Source: Zygnema circumcarinatum SAG 698-1b
Taxonomy: Eukaryota > Plantae > Zygnematophyceae
DNA: 64,000 bases
Direction: 5' to 3'
Assembly: GCA_037447605.1 (NCBI GenBank)
Contig: CM074805.1
Coordinates: 2,141,361-2,205,360 of the forward strand
The translations under genes and the position numbers were made by a program. Below the pieces are notes generated by a model. It did no database searches. It had not been told where the DNA came from and was given only the letters and a program-made list of their open reading frames with translations. Position 1 is the first letter of the stretch, and each line of letters opens with the position of its first letter. Of this stretch, positions 7,012-15,822 are shown in pieces.

Positions 7012-9452
<2,441 letters not shown>

Positions 9453-9516
9453 GGCTGCCGCGCGTGATCGCTCCGCAGAACCCCGCGGAAGAGACCCCCT
9501 TCGCTGGAGGCGCTGC

Positions 9517-9595
9517 CTTTTATACGCGGCTGCTAGCGGCGCCGCGCGAGCGTTTAGGGTTCACGTCCGCTCCGCTCCGTCGCGCCGCGCCCATA
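9517..9595 (-). promoter_or_regulatory. RPL10 core promoter: TATAAAAAG, telo-box-like AACCCTA and site-II-like ATGGGC
   Basis: Minus strand has TATAAAAAG at 9525-9517, GAACCCTAAA at ~9552-9561 and ATGGGCG at ~9588-9594. Telo-box plus site II is the known plant ribosomal-protein promoter module. Confidence 0.6.
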
Positions 9596-11188
9596 AAAGA
9601 GAGCGCCCGCCAGTAGAGAGGGTCGTAGCTTCCCTCCCTCCTTCCTCCCTCCGCCTCGCCGGGCGGCGGCCGAAGGGCATGGAAGGAAGGAAGCGCCCTC
9701 GCGCTGCTGCGGCGAAGGCGTCCTGCGCACTGCCGGCTGAGCAGTAGTGACAGGGCGGGAGGTCAGCGGTCTTTGAGGAGGCGGTGGTAAGAAAGTTTGT
9801 GCAGACAAACAAAGAGGAGTGAACCAGGAGCTACAACTGCTCGTTGCGTGAATGGACGACTGCGTGCTTTGCAGTGGTTATCATCGCTAGTGAAGGGAAA
9901 GGAAAGAAACAGTCGTTATGGTGCGGCCTGTAGAGAGATAGAACGGTAGCTTTGCAAAGTGGTCTGAAGGGGATGAACTTTGTGACAGTTAGTAAATATG
10001 CATCTGCTTGCGTTGCGATTTCGCATGCTTCACGAAGGCTACGAGGGATTAGTCAAAGTGCGGGCGTTATGACATGTTCAAGTTGTCCAGCAGGAGGCAA
10101 AGCCGACCTTGGGCAGATATGAAGAAAAGTCCTAAGAGTCGGTAAAGGAAATGAAATATCCAAGATGTGGAGAAAGAACTCGCGAAGGTCTTCTGCCATC
10201 TCCAGATGGATAATTTTCTCCAAACGACTCAGGAAGGAGCTTTCAAATAGGCCATGTCAAACTTAAAAATCGTCAGTAGCATTGAAGGAAAGGCATCAGT
10301 CACTCGGATACCAAAACGAGTACTCTGTGGACATAGCGATCCGCTTGCAAAACTGTGCTCCGTATATGTTATCTTTAGTACTACTTACGAAAGAGAGAGG
10401 GAGGGAAATGGCAAGAAAAAACTTCCATTTGATTTTGTGAAGTCTGGCATGCCCTAATAGCAACATGACAAGAAGAATATCCATAGGATGACAGCTCGCA
10501 AAGCAAGCGCCACAAGCGCGTCACGAGCACACGGTCAGCGTTGGCCAGGCTGAGCCGACCGTGAATCCTTTGATCCGTTGTTATTTTTTTGAGCCATAGA
10601 GATGCAAGGTGCAATTGTGAACAGCACAAGAGAAAGCTGAACTGTTGTACTTAAGTCCAAACGTAGGAAGCAACCTATTCAAACAGCACCGCACAGGCTT
10701 CCACAAATTACAGTGTTTACTGAAATGCCGGACTTGGAAAATGGAAGTGTTTCTTCGACTATCTCCACGGTACTATACTGAACACTACCGCAGTCTTGTA
10801 CGCAAAGCCGATTTTCAAAGCTTTTTTCTCATCCTTTTCTGTACATCACCTATACTGATATGTATCTTTATACCACCAGTACTCTAGTAGAAGCTCACAA
10901 GGTCATATTCATCATGACCGCACCTTTCGTAGTATTTGCTGTTCCCTTTTTCCACTGAGATTGTCCAACCTTGCATGACTCGAGGTTTTTGACCATTCCA
11001 TTTCAAACAGTATTTGCTCCCAAAAGATCAAAGAAGCACGGGCGCATGGTAACTGGTTCTTAAACGCAGATACGAAGTACATTCGCAATGAGAAAACCAC
11101 CAAAAGGACATGGAGAATGAGAATTGTTGGAAAAAATCACTGTACAGCAGGATCCCTCTGACTTGTCACTGGCACAAACAGCACCCCT

Positions 11189-12805
11189 CTAATTTCTGCC
11201 TCGCTTCTTCTTCACTGGAAACAGCTTTTTGCCCGTCACACCAATTAAGTCTACGTGGAGATTCTCCCGAACCAGGCGCCTCCTAACGACCTCTTTATTG
11301 ATGCAGATTTTACACAGAGTGAACTTCAAGGGCGCATATTGCATTGCAGCCTCGTGACGCACTGGAAACTCTCCACGCAAACCGCATGAGCGACATGCCC
11401 GCTTGCTGTACAGGCTGCGCCACTGCCGTGAAAAACACAACATCAGCAAAGCTATTTGAAACATGAACATAACATAATTAAAAAAAACATAACTGAAATT
11501 GAAAAATGCTTTACTTGCTTCAACTAATGAACCTGCCTCCTGTGATCCACGAGTTCTGACTTACAGTGAACAGCCTCAAGCAATCACAGACTACAAGGAC
11601 CAGGGACACAGCGAAATCTCCCATTCCCAACAAACTGATAAATGATGATGCCAAACACGGCTTGTGACACGTCATGTTCCTGAAAACTGGCCATGACATG
11701 GCATGCAGGATCAAGAAAAGCATCAGTCGTCAACATGTATTACTTTGAAAAAAAGCGAACAGTCAAACTTACAGGAAAACAAACTTTACAGGATAGACCC
11801 CTGGGGAAACGAGGGAGGTTCCAACGTCGTTGATCACACTCCTGCTTAAAGATGAGCTCAGCAGCTTCCGCCCAACTCTTGCATACCTGAAATGAAGCAT
11901 CGACAAAATCAAGTTTTTAGAGGATGAACACTCTACGAAGTCACGAAACTACTACGCCACATGCAGGACCACGATACACAACCACAACCGCAAATGTATA
12001 GCTGCGTCGAAGAGCAGCATATGCAAGTCTCATTTAGCCGACATGTGGGATTGAGAAAAACATGGAGGCAAGCATATCAGGATACTCGTATTTAAATTAA
12101 ACGCTGGGTTCATCAGGCATTGTTTCGGAACTTTCAAGGCCATCATTAGTTGAGCACACCTGAGAGGCTTGGAGTAATTGGGGTAAAGAAAGACAAGAGA
12201 GGATGTGCTGAAGCAGGTCAGCTTGTGATCCATTTGTTAGCTGCTCCAGAATATTGGAACTGCAAGCGCCAGCTATAACCCTGAACAGGAACGCCTGCTT
12301 TGGACTTTCAAGGAACGCACTCTGCGCTGGCATAACTCCACGTCAACCAAAACGACAATGTTATTGAGCAACTCTTCACATGCTCAACCACATATATGAT
12401 GAATAGCCTCTAAACTCCCCTACCAGCTGATTCTACAACATACAGCCTGATGCCAAGGCAGAAGACGAACATCAGGAAGTTCAATGCAGGCGCCAAAATC
12501 GACTTTTGAGTAAATACAGCATGACAAGGAATAAAGAACACACTCACAAATGACAATTATTATTGAAAGAGAATGGATAAAATCTGCAATCACATACCTT
12601 CTATAGAAGGTCTGCGTTTTCCCAGCATAGAAGTTCTCCTCCTCCTAGTAGAATCTCCAGCACTATTTACATTGAAGCCCGAGCATTCATTCAGACCTTG
12701 CGACACCTTATTCGAAATCAGAGTGTTTTTAACCGGCTGAATTCTCTGTTCTACACCTTCTACATAACGTACAGTTTTTCCGCCTATGACAAGTTCCTCT
12801 TCCAT
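11189..12805 (-). CDS. F-box protein with three C-terminal CxxC motifs (~240 aa); exons 12598-12805, 12160-12326, 11773-11886, 11189-11422
   Basis: All three introns are GT-AG and phase-compatible (1,0,0). F-box-like segment DLLQHILSCLSLPQLLQASQ|VCKSWAEAAE, then LSCKVCFP|WRSLYSKRACRSC...LCKIC. Confidence 0.75.
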
Positions 12806-12998
12806 TTCAGGAGAATCACTTCACCAAACGAGGTGCTTCAAAATGCCTAACTGTTCATCGACCCAGCTACCTCTCACGAGATAAGCGAAAGACTCAATTC
12901 CTGCAAAACGACCTCTCTACAAGTAGTCCTAGTCTTCCCGTCTACCTGCCACCCAGAAACCACCCTCCTCACCTACCAACCCCTCGTCTGTCTTCCTC

Positions 12999-13712
12999 TC
13001 AACGCCGGCTACGACTCGGCCGGTTGTATTCGTCAGGCAATTCTTCCAGGGACGACCACCAAGCACGTTCATCCATAGAGGCAGGAGGTGAAGCACGGGA
13101 ACGATGCTGCTCCCTCAGTTGAGCAGAATCAACCAAGCCAAACTTGTCTTCAGGAACCCAAACCCCTGAAACTGGATCAGGATGCCACCACTTCGCATTC
13201 TTCTGCTTTTCCCAAAAAACGGGATCAACTCCTTGCTTCTCGGCAGCTTTGAAATCCACTTTAAAACCCTTCTCCTTTTCAATTATTTGTCGCTCACTAG
13301 GTTCATGAATGTCGTCCTCGATATCCTCCACAGCAGAACCAAAAGAGCGCCTGAAACATCAACGCATTGGGTAAGCAAAGTGATAGACGCCAATACCAAG
13401 GAAGTCATCCTCTAAAAAATAAACCCTTGGAAAAAAGACTACCATTTTAACACCAGAGCTGTCTGCTTAAGTCACTGCAACGAAAGAGCACACCAAACCC
13501 CGATAGACCATCCAACCATCACCATTCAACCCCAAGTCCTGCCGCCACTTTCCACCTCTACCAACCCTGCTGCGTCACTCATGTCCCAAAAAACAAATGA
13601 ACTCAAAAACGGCGCTTGTTTCCTACCAAGCCTGGACCGCAGCCGTCCTCCCACTCTGACTCTGCCGTTGTGCGGCTGTCCTACCTACCACCACCAACGC
13701 CCTAATGCTCAT
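12999..13712 (-). CDS. LEA_3 (LEA5/SAG21-like) late-embryogenesis-abundant protein (~145 aa); exons 13627-13712 and 12999-13350
   Basis: Phase-2 GT-AG intron. The N-terminus MSIRALVVVGRTAAQRQSQSGRTAAVQAWRSFGS resembles a mitochondrial presequence. Diagnostic motif WWHPDPVSGVWVPED, followed by AQLREQ and WWSSLE. Confidence 0.85.
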
Positions 13713-13989
13713 TGCTGACCGAGAAAGCACCCCTGCTTCCCTGCACCTCTGCCAACCTTCCCCCTCCCAAACCCCTCCCTCCGCTCGCCTACCTTCCAAA
13801 CCCCTCCCCCTGCAATTCCCCTTCCCTTCAAAACCCTTCCTCTCCCTCAAGCCTCCCCCACCACTGCTCACCTCCTACCGTCGCTGGCCGGCTGGAGCCA
13901 TAAGTAGTCGGCCGGTCAGTCCCGGGGTCCGGGCGGATAGGCCTCCGCGGCCCGCTTCGACCTCCCGCCTGCGAGGGAGGGCGCCGGGC

Positions 13990-14123
13990 CACGTCGGCTC
14001 GGGACCACTTCGCGCGCGTGGCGTGCTCCGACGGCCCGGGAGGCGGTCAACGCTGTCACGTGGCGGGAGGTCGGAGTCGCGCTGCAGGTCGCTGACGTGG
14101 TCGCTTACGTGGAAGTTCCACGT
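13990..14123. promoter_or_regulatory. Cluster of five ACGT-core ABRE/G-box-like elements upstream of the LEA_3 gene
   Basis: CACGTC 13990, CACGTGGC 14057, ACGTGG 14095, ACGTGG 14107 and CCACGT 14118, lying 280-410 bp upstream of the ATG. Confidence 0.6.
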
Positions 14124-14744
14124 CGGCTTCGAGCAAGGGTCGGGTCGGCGGGAGGCAGAGCCAGTAACGCCCTGACTAGCCTGACTCATATGACCTGGTC
14201 AACCAGCGCGGTCCGAGCTGAAACGCTTTCGCAGGGAGCGACCAGCGACTCACTTTCACATTAAGCAACCAGTTGCGCTTTTGTTTGTTTTCTTTGTTGT
14301 TGCAGATTTTAAGCTATTTGGCCGATACACAATTAGTTTGATTTTTTCTTTTGATATTCATTGTGTGTGCAATGATTGGCATTGAACTGACAATGGCGAT
14401 GCCATGAAATGTGCATTGACAACAACAACACGAGACCCACGAGGAACTGACCGGTCGCAAAGGACCTGAGGAAGAACGAAAAGAGCCATGAGCGGAACTC
14501 TGCTTCCAGCCCCACCCAACAACAACAACAAGAAGGCGGCTCTGGCATCCGTCATGTCATGTATGTATGGATATACAGTGTACTCGCAGTGTACCATGTC
14601 GGCCCCCATGTATTTATGTCACTATATCCGTAATAACCCGTTTGTCACTTCACATGACCGCCTGTCACTTTTTTTCTTCACATATATAGTGACGGTGTTA
14701 TTACAGATGTCTTTGCTGTGTATCCGTACATATTTCATACCGTA

Positions 14745-15822
14745 CAGTAGGACCCCGTCATATTTTCCACCTACATTTGGCAAAAATCGGGCGAAAATAT
14801 TGTATTTGGCAAATATAAGGTCCGTGTTACCAATAGGCGAGCGGAATTATGTTAGAGTTCATGTATGTTCGTACATATCGTATCGCTTGCTGTAATATCG
14901 CATCGCATCGTACCGTATCGTATCGTGGCAAACCGCATACAGTACATGAAGCACGCCTTAGCGTTTACTGAGGCAGCAAACCAAAAAGCTTCGAGCCCGT
15001 AACGGCTACTACAGCTCGTACGGCTCGTACGGATAGTACCGTACCGTATCGTATCGTATCGTATCGTATCGTATCGAAGCCAAGAAGAAGTGGAGAAGAG
15101 CGAGCGCCTCTTACGGCGGCACGTGCGGGGAGAATAGGTGAGTTTTGCCGCTTTTGCGTAAGCCCGTGACGGCTAGTACAGCTACAGTCTAATCACGTTA
15201 TAGTGACACTGTTTATAAGAACAGCATGGATATACTGACTTTTTTTCCGGGAACGGAATTGCACCACTGCAGATCCTGCGCCAGTAGTGACGCCATTACG
15301 GATATAATGACGTTGAAAAACCCTGATTGTTACTATATATTCAAAATGTCGATATTATCCACCCACGTATTGGAATATGCGTTACAAATATATTTACGAC
15401 CGTACACATTATCGACTAATATCGTCAGATATCGACTTGACCGTACATATCAAGTTGTCCGTACACATGCTCACTAGGGTTCGTACACACCTACCCACGT
15501 GACGACTGCCCAAAAAGTACAATGTACGGAATCAAAGTCGTACGGATATACCGCAAAAACATATGTAATAACATTGTTACTATAAATGTGAAATGACAAA
15601 CGGGTCATTACCGATATAGTGACACAAATGTGTGGGGACCGACATGGACACTATAACGTGATTAGACTGTAGTACGAGAAGTACGGTTAGTACGGTTAGT
15701 ACGGTTAGTACAAATAGTACGGATAACACAAGTTACCGTACAAAAAGGTGGTTTCGGCAAAATCGGGGCGAATTTCTTGGGGACGCACTTTTGATGGTGG
15801 AAAATATGACGGGGTCCTACTG
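14745..15822. mobile_element. MITE family A (Tc1/mariner-type, TA TSD), ~590 bp without its insert, inserted in family B
   Basis: TIR CAGTAGGACCCCGTCATATTTTCCACC...GGTGGAAAATATGACGGGGTCCTACTG with TA flanks. Internal (CGTAT)n and (GTACGGTTA)n arrays. A second copy lies at 44282-53503. Confidence 0.9.
15185..15669. mobile_element. MITE family B, inner copy (485 bp), inverted relative to the outer copy
   Basis: TIR CAGTCTAATCACGTTATAGTG...CACTATAACGTGATTAGACTG with TA flanks. This segment is absent from the family A copy at 44-53 kb. Confidence 0.88.

Follow-up and report, generated by a model that had tools for sequence, protein, structure and literature searches.

Two closely spaced genes on the minus strand of Zygnema circumcarinatum SAG 698-1b, one encoding a LEA_3 protein and the other an F-box protein, raise the question of whether they are transcribed separately or as one unit carrying two open reading frames. 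They are situated in a 64,000-nt stretch of contig CM074805.1 (termed the window). The initial annotation, made from the sequence, proposed a dicistronic unit with no room for a second promoter. Assembled RNA contigs, protein family searches and comparisons with other species are used here to analyze this proposal.

Exon and intron structure

The LEA_3a gene has two exons, with its ATG at position 13712 and a TGA stop codon at 13001–12999. The F-box gene has four exons, with its ATG at 12805 and its stop codon at 11191–11189. The open reading frames are 438 nt (145 aa) and 723 nt (240 aa) in length, respectively. Both are on the minus strand, as are all features described below, and the spacer between the LEA stop codon and the F-box ATG (positions 12998–12806) is 193 nt long. 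Thus the orientation and the approximate 193-bp distance originally given are borne out.

Four introns, with sizes of 271–350 nt and a U content of 0.34–0.39, are real: their GT..AG joints are found in assembled RNA contigs in all four runs, which come from four studies. LEA_3 exon 1 (13627–13735), defined by the contig splice together with the sequence, contains the ATG and encodes 28 codons plus 2 nt. The LEA_3 intron (13351–13626) is 276 nt, has GT..AG ends, and its joint is at 13349/13626 (cut +1; four of four runs); contig 30 of run X8 shows positions 13735–13626 joined to 13349–12598. A lariat-type joint in X8, which goes back 255, places a branch A near 13372 in the sequence CTTAC. The next exon is a composite of 753 nt (12598–13350) that includes the LEA_3 exon 2 coding sequence (13350–12999), the spacer, and the first F-box coding segment (12805–12598). 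F-box intron 1 (12327–12597, 271 nt, joint 12326/12598), intron 2 (11887–12159, 273 nt, joint 11884/12158, cut +2) and intron 3 (11423–11772, 350 nt, joint 11422/11773) were each detected in all four runs. They separate exon 2 (12160–12326), exon 3 (11773–11886) and exon 4 (11045–11422), and the 3′ UTR extends at least 145 nt beyond the F-box stop codon.

The LEA_3 and F-box proteins

The assignment of the upstream gene is confirmed by a match of LEA exon 2 to Pfam LEA_3a (PF03242) above the curated cut-off (31.7 bits, cut-off 24.7, E-value = 2.2e-7). The LEA_3 core W-x-PDP-x-(S/T)G-x-W-x-P is present, and the segments WWHPDPVSGVWVPED and ASMDERAWWSSLEE are invariant between this protein, Closterium and other orthologues. 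The N-terminus is rich in arginine and has no acidic residues. It looks like a presequence and hints at mitochondrial targeting.

Exons 2–4 of the downstream gene can be aligned, in colinear order, to a small and conserved family of F-box/CxxC..CxxC proteins, in agreement with the original identification. Exon 2 encodes the N-terminal half of the F-box (LLQHILSCLSLPQLLQASQ), exon 3 the C-terminal half followed by a W-x-LPR-x-PRG motif, and exon 4 a family-specific domain, WRxLY..CRSCG..GEFPVR..LCxxC..VDLxGxTGKKL. The F-box domain is split by an intron and exon 2 by itself scores 16.4 bits, below the cut-off of 20.5, but colinear homologues score above this value (32.7–34 bits for P0017 and 23.8–29.1 bits for P0004).

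The family profile matches the F-boxes of FBXW7 and SKP2 in the PDB (E-value = 6e-6). An AF2 model of a family member, P0005 (pLDDT 90.8), has residues 18–94 that match Skp1-bound F-boxes (Cdc4, FBXO3, FBXO31, FBXW7) with Z values of 5.5–6.7. The model thus predicts the three-helix F-box fold for this homologue, and Skp1 binding is putative. The C-terminal four-cysteine domain displays weak fold matches (Z = 3.0–3.4) to ZZ, B-box or RING-like structures. Foldseek gave no match beyond the F-box part, the protein atlas gave generic F-box clusters only (below 0.9), and a word search with F-box exon 4 yielded no match. With the family alignment as a query, 3 of 8000 word-search candidates passed. 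The alignment has eight invariant columns, four of them cysteines, and there are only 40 matches among 1.84 billion cluster representatives. This is a conserved, uncharacterised Viridiplantae F-box family.

Transcription across the gene pair

The RNA data are four runs in the form of assembled contigs, which are blind to strand, starts, poly(A) ends and single molecules. That the runs represent RNA is shown by minus-strand GT..AG ends at all joints, by depths of 5–24 in introns versus 100–320 in exons, and by a depth of 0 at the intergenic positions 14256–14449.

In every run a single unbranched contig of 754 nt (12598–13351) connects LEA exon 2 to F-box exon 1 across the spacer, with depths of 116, 299, 242 and 285. 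In X8 LEA exon 1 is also spliced to the spanning contig. The two genes have comparable RNA levels. Over the four runs the LEA junction has depths of 79.5, 178, 181 and 285, F-box junction 1 has 71, 249, 134 and 180, and F-box junction 2 has 60, 322, 179 and 186. The ratio of the LEA junction to F-box junctions 1 and 2 is 0.55–1.6, and the overall LEA to F-box ratio ranges from 0.55 to 1.8, approximately 2-fold either way, in a comparison of four points where contig depth is a crude measure. The neighbouring RNA at 9692–10850 varies from 21 to 1344 in the same runs, about a 65-fold spread. Contigs that retain introns are also alike in depth in both genes (LEA 11–24, F-box 5–15).

The LEA_3 and F-box genes therefore probably constitute one transcription unit that gives rise to a bicistronic mRNA, a reading held with moderate overall confidence, and there is a reasonably good likelihood that this RNA is the main RNA of both open reading frames. 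Co-transcription, as first proposed, is supported by the unbroken spacer contigs in all four runs, by the similar junction depths and by an RNA contig from a second species with the same order of open reading frames (described below).

A contig across two genes does not, however, show a single transcript, since overlapping transcripts would merge. The competing explanation is that there are two separate, overlapping mRNAs: an F-box mRNA that starts in the spacer or in LEA exon 2 from a weak promoter with no island, and a LEA_3 mRNA whose poly(A) site is within the spacer or F-box exon 1. This we regard as fairly unlikely. An example of such merging is present at the locus itself, where one contig in X3 and X4 joins F-box exon 4 to the adjacent 9692–10850 RNA; the latter is presumably a separate transcript, because an adapter marks an end of it at 9692 and its abundance is very unlike that of the F-box gene. 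The LEA to F-box junction ratio, which varies 3-fold among runs, also favours two mRNAs, and together with an approximate 1.5-fold depth step at the LEA/F-box boundary in X8 it makes some LEA-only or F-box-only RNA possible. On the other hand, depth in X1 and X3 changes gradually along the unit and goes on changing within the F-box gene, with no steps at the boundary. Near-equal RNA levels in four studies, and equal depths of unspliced introns, would be unexpected if separate promoters drove the genes of a regulatory F-box protein and an abundant stress protein.

The distribution of promoter elements also speaks against two mRNAs. On the 5′ side of LEA_3 there is a GC-rich promoter island with a purine-rich leader (13736–14260). 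The island is 560 nt, has up to 0.76 GC and contains six ACGTG cores at 13990–14119, two of which are ACGTGGC. The main transcript start is somewhere in 13735–13870, and RNA depth drops to 0–13 above 13868. A minor alternative 5′ exon (13872–14190) is spliced to 13350 (joint 13349/13871) and bypasses the exon with the LEA ATG. Its joint has depths of 6.6 in X3 and 13.4 in X4 (contigs 16 and 23), about 2%–5% of the main form. Neither a GC island (≥0.62 GC) nor an ACGTG(G/T)C sequence is found at positions 11673–13620. The observation that the spacer lacks the GC-rich, G-box-bearing type of promoter is thus correct, with no GC/ACGTG island belonging to the F-box gene. The 193 nt are too few to accommodate a 3′ UTR plus a promoter and a 5′ UTR, unless the promoter is inside the LEA coding exon.

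The initial annotation also envisaged an ABRE-driven mRNA that would couple stress protection to targeted proteolysis; both the ABRE-driven expression and the coupling are hypothetical. The ABRE-like sequence ACGTG(G/T)C occurs 33 times in the whole window (11.3 expected), which has about ten strong GC islands, and it is present in most promoter islands. Therefore the motif is not specific to the LEA_3 gene.

The spacer

A near-consensus 72-nt intron had been proposed in the spacer at 12901–12972. The motifs are found at these places (tag/GTGAGG at 12972 and TTTTGCAG ending at 12901), but the segment is not spliced: none of the four runs has a 12972/12901 joint, and the 754-nt contig keeps positions 12901–12972 at full depth. 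In addition, the candidate is G-rich and U-poor (GC 0.54, U 0.25) and is four times shorter than the real introns. It is therefore rejected as an intron.

The close spacing and the splice-like motifs are also the only points in favour of a single gene for a LEA_3–F-box fusion protein, with the LEA stop codon removed by splicing. Such a fusion is extremely improbable and is contradicted by the data. The candidate intron is 3′ of the stop codon and is unspliced, no joint leaves LEA exon 2 in the four RNA runs, an in-frame TGA is present 18 nt 5′ of the F-box ATG, and no member of the F-box family has a LEA_3 domain at its N-terminus.

The predicted fold of the spacer RNA is no better than that of shuffled sequences (z = +0.37), and Rfam shows no match in 9300–14400. 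On these grounds an internal ribosome entry structure in the spacer was rejected. Neither AATAAA nor TGTAA is found within the 193 nt, although this alga may use a different poly(A) signal. At its start the spacer has a stretch of ~90 nt with 63%–70% purine that resembles a leader, a property that would suit a separate F-box mRNA. The F-box gene had been described as lacking the purine-rich leader found before other genes. This is only partly so, as the stretch is moderately purine-rich, yet it is a weaker and shorter version of the LEA leader (150 nt, ~80% purine).

Linkage of the two genes in other species

L006, a Logan contig of ERR11260153 from another species, displays a LEA_3 open reading frame, a 252-nt spacer and an F-box open reading frame (P0017), in the same order as in the window. 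Its LEA_3 sequence carries the same ASMDERAWWSSLE motif as the window LEA_3. At the intron positions of the window genes both of its open reading frames continue without a break, which shows that L006 represents spliced RNA.

Linkage is not found in Closterium, which has its LEA_3 and F-box genes on separate contigs and no LEA gene within 8 kb, or in Sphagnum, where there is no LEA gene within 10 kb of the F-box gene. Nor is it present in an alga from a marine metagenome (L015) or in RNA contigs L004/5, L007–9, L011 and L014. An ancestral linkage was rejected for all of these. A search with the LEA alignment yielded no confirmed locus. In a species with a 74%-identical LEA (L001), the sequence after the LEA stop codon shares only purine richness with the window spacer, and the contig ends 197 nt after that stop codon. 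Synteny of the pair, which had been suggested as a check, thus holds in one second species and fails in Closterium, Sphagnum and several others.

The closest F-box relative, P0004/P0044, forms a clade with the window F-box protein (support 98/87). Its contigs (L004 and L005) end in sequencing adapter approximately 210–245 nt 5′ of the ATG and have no LEA sequence. This relative has its own transcript start, and both this and the restricted occurrence of the linkage count against the bicistronic reading. The adapter-marked ends are at a distance from the ATG that is near the 193-nt spacer length, and this is a further point for two overlapping mRNAs at the window locus.

Possible translation of the downstream open reading frame

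On the preferred reading of a bicistronic mRNA, transcription would start at the GC-rich, ACGTG-bearing island (~13740–14260) and the product would be one spliced mRNA of about 1.6–1.8 kb with five exons and four introns. It would carry two separate open reading frames, the 145-aa LEA_3a with its presequence-like N-terminus and then the 240-aa F-box protein with its C-terminal four-cysteine domain. The LEA_3 AUG has G at −3 and A at +4, the leader has no AUG upstream of it, and ordinary scanning would bring ribosomes to LEA_3 at this first AUG. The F-box AUG, with G at both −3 and +4, is in the strongest context of the unit. It is preceded by five AUGs where 7.9 are expected, which is not a significant depletion (P = 0.13), and four of the five have T at −3. 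In L006 AUGs upstream of the F-box AUG are enriched, with 13 present (8.2 expected), seven of them in the spacer (3.0 expected). An AUG-rich spacer such as this fits poorly with scanning from the LEA cap and so favours two overlapping mRNAs.

Because it is behind a full-length open reading frame and five further AUGs, the F-box open reading frame would be accessible to only a minority of ribosomes, either by leaky scanning or by reinitiation. LEA_3 would then act as a very large upstream open reading frame that limits F-box synthesis and couples it to LEA_3 transcription. Actual translation of the F-box protein from the bicistronic RNA is possible but somewhat doubtful.

A further alternative is that the spanning RNA is real and the F-box open reading frame on it is untranslated. 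The RNA would function as a LEA_3 mRNA whose long 3′ UTR contains introns, maybe regulated by decay, and any F-box protein would be made from another, rare RNA that is monocistronic or has an alternative start. The position of the open reading frame, after 145 codons that begin with a purine at −3 and after five more AUGs, agrees with this, as does a spacer with no unusual RNA structure for internal entry, and a minor isoform with an alternative 5′ exon exists. Second open reading frames of Arabidopsis read-through bicistrons are rarely translated and the RNAs are targets of nonsense-mediated decay (NMD) (PMC9768141). By analogy with these, a LEA stop codon followed by three introns should lead to NMD in plants, which is a point against a bicistronic mRNA. 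The alternative is nevertheless quite unlikely. The F-box open reading frame is intact, correctly spliced and strongly conserved, and is therefore under selection and translated from some RNA, while no separate RNA is visible. Moreover, its AUG has the most favourable context, the spanning RNA is abundant compared with Arabidopsis read-through RNAs (~0.06% of all transcripts; PMC9768141), and the order of the two open reading frames is kept in a second species.

Comparison with known bicistronic transcripts

Polycistronic loci of chlorophyte algae (Chlamydomonas, Chromochloris and Auxenochlorella; PMC7896298, PMC11291117) have two small, unrelated open reading frames on the same strand with a gap of about 200 nt and one promoter region. 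Their two open reading frames are similar in RNA abundance, with a co-expression r of about 0.97 (PMC7896298), introns occur inside the unit, and the arrangement is kept in one further species or more. The window pair agrees with this in its open reading frames, RNA levels, introns and occurrence in a second species, and a single promoter region is suggested by the absence of a GC island and of ACGTG(G/T)C before the F-box gene. Its sizes (438 and 723 nt, spacer 193 nt) match the chlorophyte medians of 444–600 and 852–876 nt with an inter-ORF distance of 212–260 nt (PMC7896298). There are differences, however. The host belongs to the streptophyte algae, with Closterium as its nearest named relatives. 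The chlorophyte criteria are the presence of both open reading frames on single full-length molecules (Iso-Seq), one promoter with no start-site mark before the second open reading frame, and one poly(A) site that follows the last of them, whereas the window pair is known from short-read contigs. In bicistrons translated by leaky scanning the first open reading frame has a weak start context and AUGs are depleted before the second (PMC11291117). This signature is absent here: the LEA AUG has its purine at −3, and AUGs before the F-box open reading frame are not depleted in the window unit or in L006. The mechanism demonstrated in chlorophytes is therefore not obviously applicable.

The CDC26-TTM3 pair is a conserved bicistron of the plant lineage, in which a short upstream open reading frame and a functionally unrelated downstream one share one mRNA. 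CDC26 is much shorter than LEA_3, and the CDC26-TTM3 pair is conserved very widely. In contrast, the LEA_3–F-box pair is seen in two species only and is absent from Closterium and Sphagnum. The CDC26-TTM3 transcript of land plants is cited in both PMC9768141 and PMC11291117.

Arabidopsis read-through bicistrons are rare, arise by intergenic splicing and are found beside dominant monocistronic mRNAs (PMC9768141). The window RNA is similar to them in having a first stop codon followed by a second open reading frame and introns, and poor translation of that second open reading frame is predicted. It is unlike them in that the depth of the spanning contig equals that of each gene and there is no intergenic joint.

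A resemblance to mRNAs gated by upstream open reading frames is also seen. A regulatory protein is preceded by an upstream open reading frame and by a three-codon mini-uORF (ATG AAC AGT TAG) in the spacer at 12849–12858, 44 nt 5′ of the F-box ATG; the leaders of the monocistronic F-box relatives L004 and L005 are likewise rich in upstream AUGs (five in ~245 nt). Here, however, the “uORF” is a full-length, conserved 145-aa protein recognized by Pfam.

Significance

A search of literature text showed no report of a nuclear polycistronic mRNA in zygnematophyte or streptophyte algae. A speculative proposal, which we consider unlikely in its full form, is that the full-length and well-initiated LEA_3 open reading frame is a translational gate for an orphan F-box/zinc-finger adaptor. 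F-box synthesis would be locked to LEA_3 transcriptionally and released only when stress changes start-codon stringency or reinitiation, and the unit would have to escape or exploit NMD despite the three introns after its first stop codon. In that case no earlier nuclear bicistronic gene would be known from the algae that are sister to land plants, and this one would work in another way than the chlorophyte bicistrons.

Nuclear polycistronic mRNAs are known in chlorophyte algae and for a few land-plant genes, and a validated case in the window would bridge both groups. With gene callers that expect a single open reading frame in each transcript, one of these genes would be overlooked or wrongly joined. 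If the unit is real, a bicistron with no leaky-scanning signature would be a test of how an open reading frame behind another of 145 codons is reached, and it would provide a testable regulatory context for this Viridiplantae F-box family.

Gene structure and protein families

The LEA_3 and F-box genes were initially placed on the minus strand, and the gene models (13712–12999 and 12805–11189) agree. The LEA_3 gene has its ATG at 13712, a first exon ending at 13627, an intron at 13626–13351, and a second exon from 13350 to the stop codon at 13001–12999; the coding sequence of 438 nt encodes 145 aa. Exon 2 matches Pfam LEA_3a (31.7 bits, cut-off 24.7) and shares invariant WxPDPxSGxWxP and ASMDE(R/K)AWWSSLEE blocks with its orthologues. 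The closest named relatives of the protein are in Closterium spp. (53%–59% identity), which points to a zygnematophyte-like streptophyte alga within the plant lineage.

The F-box gene starts at 12805 and has exons at 12805–12598, 12326–12160, 11886–11773 and 11422–11189 (723 nt, 240 aa). A LEA_3–F-box fusion protein has a negligible chance of being the product. The coding exons were searched one at a time, and an exhaustive HMMER search of 1.84 billion cluster representatives yielded only 40 relatives of exon 4. The family proteins are 140–370 aa long. Trebouxiophyceae (Symbiochloris, Apatococcus, Myrmecia, Coccomyxa), Closterium and the mosses Sphagnum and Physcomitrium supply the named ones; others derive from marine transcriptome datasets (MMETSP, EukProt) or unnamed contigs. 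Three conserved exons of the window gene align colinearly with family members. The layout is an F-box, then W-x-x-PR-x-PRG, then a C-terminal domain of ~75 aa with four invariant Cys arranged as CxxC...CxxC. The AlphaFold model of one member, P0005, is confident (pLDDT 90.8). In this predicted structure the N-terminal half resembles Skp1-bound F-boxes (Z 5.5–6.7), and the C-terminal domain resembles ZZ, B-box or RING-like folds only weakly (Z 3.0–3.4). The second-best relative (P0005/P0060, EukProt Trinity transcripts) is annotated ".p2", the second ORF of its Trinity transcript, which implies a further ORF on that RNA. In a longer isoform the F-box ORF is extended N-terminally, without any LEA motif.

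RNA across the two genes

Logan contigs from four runs (X1, X3, X4, X8) of four studies were placed on 9600–15400. Every joint is a minus-strand GT..AG, depth is 5–24 in introns vs 100–320 in exons, and depth is 0 over intergenic 14256–14449. The four runs thus behave as RNA. Each of the four predicted introns is confirmed in every run. An X8 joint in the LEA intron that "goes back 255" (13627 to 13373) has the pattern expected from a read across the lariat; the branch A would then lie near 13372, within CTTAC and ~22 nt ahead of the acceptor. The 72-nt intron that the initial annotation proposed in the spacer (12972–12901) is not spliced: a joint was sought and found in none of the four runs, and the composition of the candidate differs from that of the real introns.

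In all four runs a single unbranched contig of 754 nt (12598–13351) takes in LEA exon 2 and F-box exon 1 together with the entire spacer between them, and in X8 LEA exon 1 is spliced onto this same contig. Junction-contig depth is the most local measure to hand. For X1, X3, X4 and X8 respectively, the LEA junction gives 79.5, 178, 181 and 285; F-box junction 1 gives 71, 249, 134 and 180; junction 2 gives 60, 322, 179 and 186; and junction 3 gives 49, (merged), 174 and 156. The depth shift in X1 and X3 is a gradient that runs on within the F-box gene and resembles positional bias along a single RNA, whereas X8 displays a ~1.5x step at the gene boundary.

An unspliced RNA of ~1.15 kb at 9692–10850 is also present in all four runs, with a 65-fold spread in depth (X1 1344, X3 62, X4 753, X8 21). 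No ATG ORF in it exceeds 67 aa and Rfam gives no match; it may be an lncRNA or a small-ORF gene. It is presumably a transcript separate from the F-box gene, given an adapter-marked end of its own (9692) and an abundance that differs greatly. In X3 and X4, one contig nevertheless fuses it with F-box exon 4; the two RNAs therefore overlap or abut there, and contig continuity alone is weak evidence.

The case for the proposed shared RNA therefore rests jointly on continuity across the spacer in all four runs and on similar junction depths. Contig depth is crude, and a contig over two genes is no demonstration of a single transcript. The two genes probably form one transcription unit, whose bicistronic mRNA is the predominant RNA for each. 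Overlapping independent LEA_3 and F-box mRNAs, which such contigs could also join, are unlikely.

Promoter and leader

The 64-kb window contains ~10 strong GC islands (maximum GC ≥0.70). One of these (13701–14260) lies directly upstream of LEA_3 and has six ACGTG cores; another (9341–9860) holds the adapter-marked RNA end at 9692. A motif and island scan found neither a GC island nor ACGTG(G/T)C in 11673–13620. Thus the F-box gene indeed has no GC-rich, ACGTG-bearing island of its own. The spacer was also said to have no long purine-rich leader; its first ~90 nt are below the LEA leader (~80% purine over 150 nt) but still 63%–70% purine. ACGTG(G/T)C is enriched window-wide (33 vs 11.3 expected) and common in GC islands, and therefore gives little information on ABA-type control of LEA_3 specifically.

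The GC island also holds a minor alternative 5′ exon (13872–14190), which joins 13350 and bypasses the LEA-ATG exon (depth 6.6 and 13.4, compared with 299 and 242 for the major isoform). Within this exon, a 104-codon ORF opens at 14189 and closes shortly before the donor. Upstream of the LEA promoter, at 14600–15400, many partly fitting contigs with loose ends and a skipped repeat (15029–15088) suggest a transcribed repeated element.

Proposed translation of the downstream open reading frame

The LEA AUG (G at −3, A at +4) is the first of the RNA. Between it and the F-box AUG (G at −3, G at +4) lie five others; four of the five have T at −3, and one starts a 3-codon mini-uORF at 12858. Five AUGs vs 7.9 expected is not a significant depletion (P=0.13). 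In chlorophyte bicistrons, ORF 1 has a weak start context, AUGs are depleted and 5′ UTRs are short (PMC11291117). In contrast, the LEA context is not weak and AUGs are not significantly depleted, and the unit thus departs from these hallmarks. Folding of the spacer RNA revealed nothing special (z = +0.37).

By analogy with Arabidopsis read-through RNAs, the three introns downstream of the LEA stop codon would be expected to trigger NMD, and translation of ORF 2 (F-box) to be poor (PMC9768141). The spanning RNA is abundant despite the expected NMD. The downstream ORF would be reached inefficiently, by leaky scanning or reinitiation; such translation of the F-box protein from the bicistronic RNA is proposed tentatively, the odds being somewhat against it.

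Conservation of the pairing

L006, a 1287-nt Logan contig (ERR11260153), has a LEA_3 ORF, a 252-nt spacer and an F-box family ORF, in that order. It is a spliced RNA, as both ORFs are uninterrupted at the positions of the window introns. The LEA_3 ORF (120 aa) falls just below the LEA_3a limit (E 3.6e-5, 24.6 bits vs a 24.7-bit cut-off) and displays 45% identity to the window LEA_3 across the conserved half. The F-box ORF (P0017) is 198 aa. L006 has an AUG excess (13 vs 8.2 expected). The domain tree does not resolve the place of P0017 and so gives no support for it as sister to the window F-box.

P0004 and P0044 are the closest F-box relatives of the window gene, in a clade with 98/87 support. 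The 5′ ends of their contigs are sequencing adapter ~210–245 nt upstream of the ATG, and LEA sequence is absent; these RNAs look as if they have an independent start. The leaders of these monocistronic-looking RNAs (L004 1–270, L005 1–236) have five uAUGs. Restricted translation may thus be a general trait of the F-box family.

The LEA_3 and F-box genes are on separate contigs in Closterium, and no LEA gene lies within 10 kb of the F-box gene in Sphagnum. No LEA ORF is present in the 323 nt upstream of the F-box gene on a marine metagenome contig (L015), and several further RNA contigs have the F-box ORF without a LEA ORF. The pairing is therefore lineage-restricted and not ancestral to the F-box family.

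Literature text searches found no report of a nuclear bicistron from zygnematophyte or streptophyte algae. As a probable bicistronic transcription unit, the LEA_3/F-box pair joins the nuclear bicistrons of the green lineage, with atypical features.
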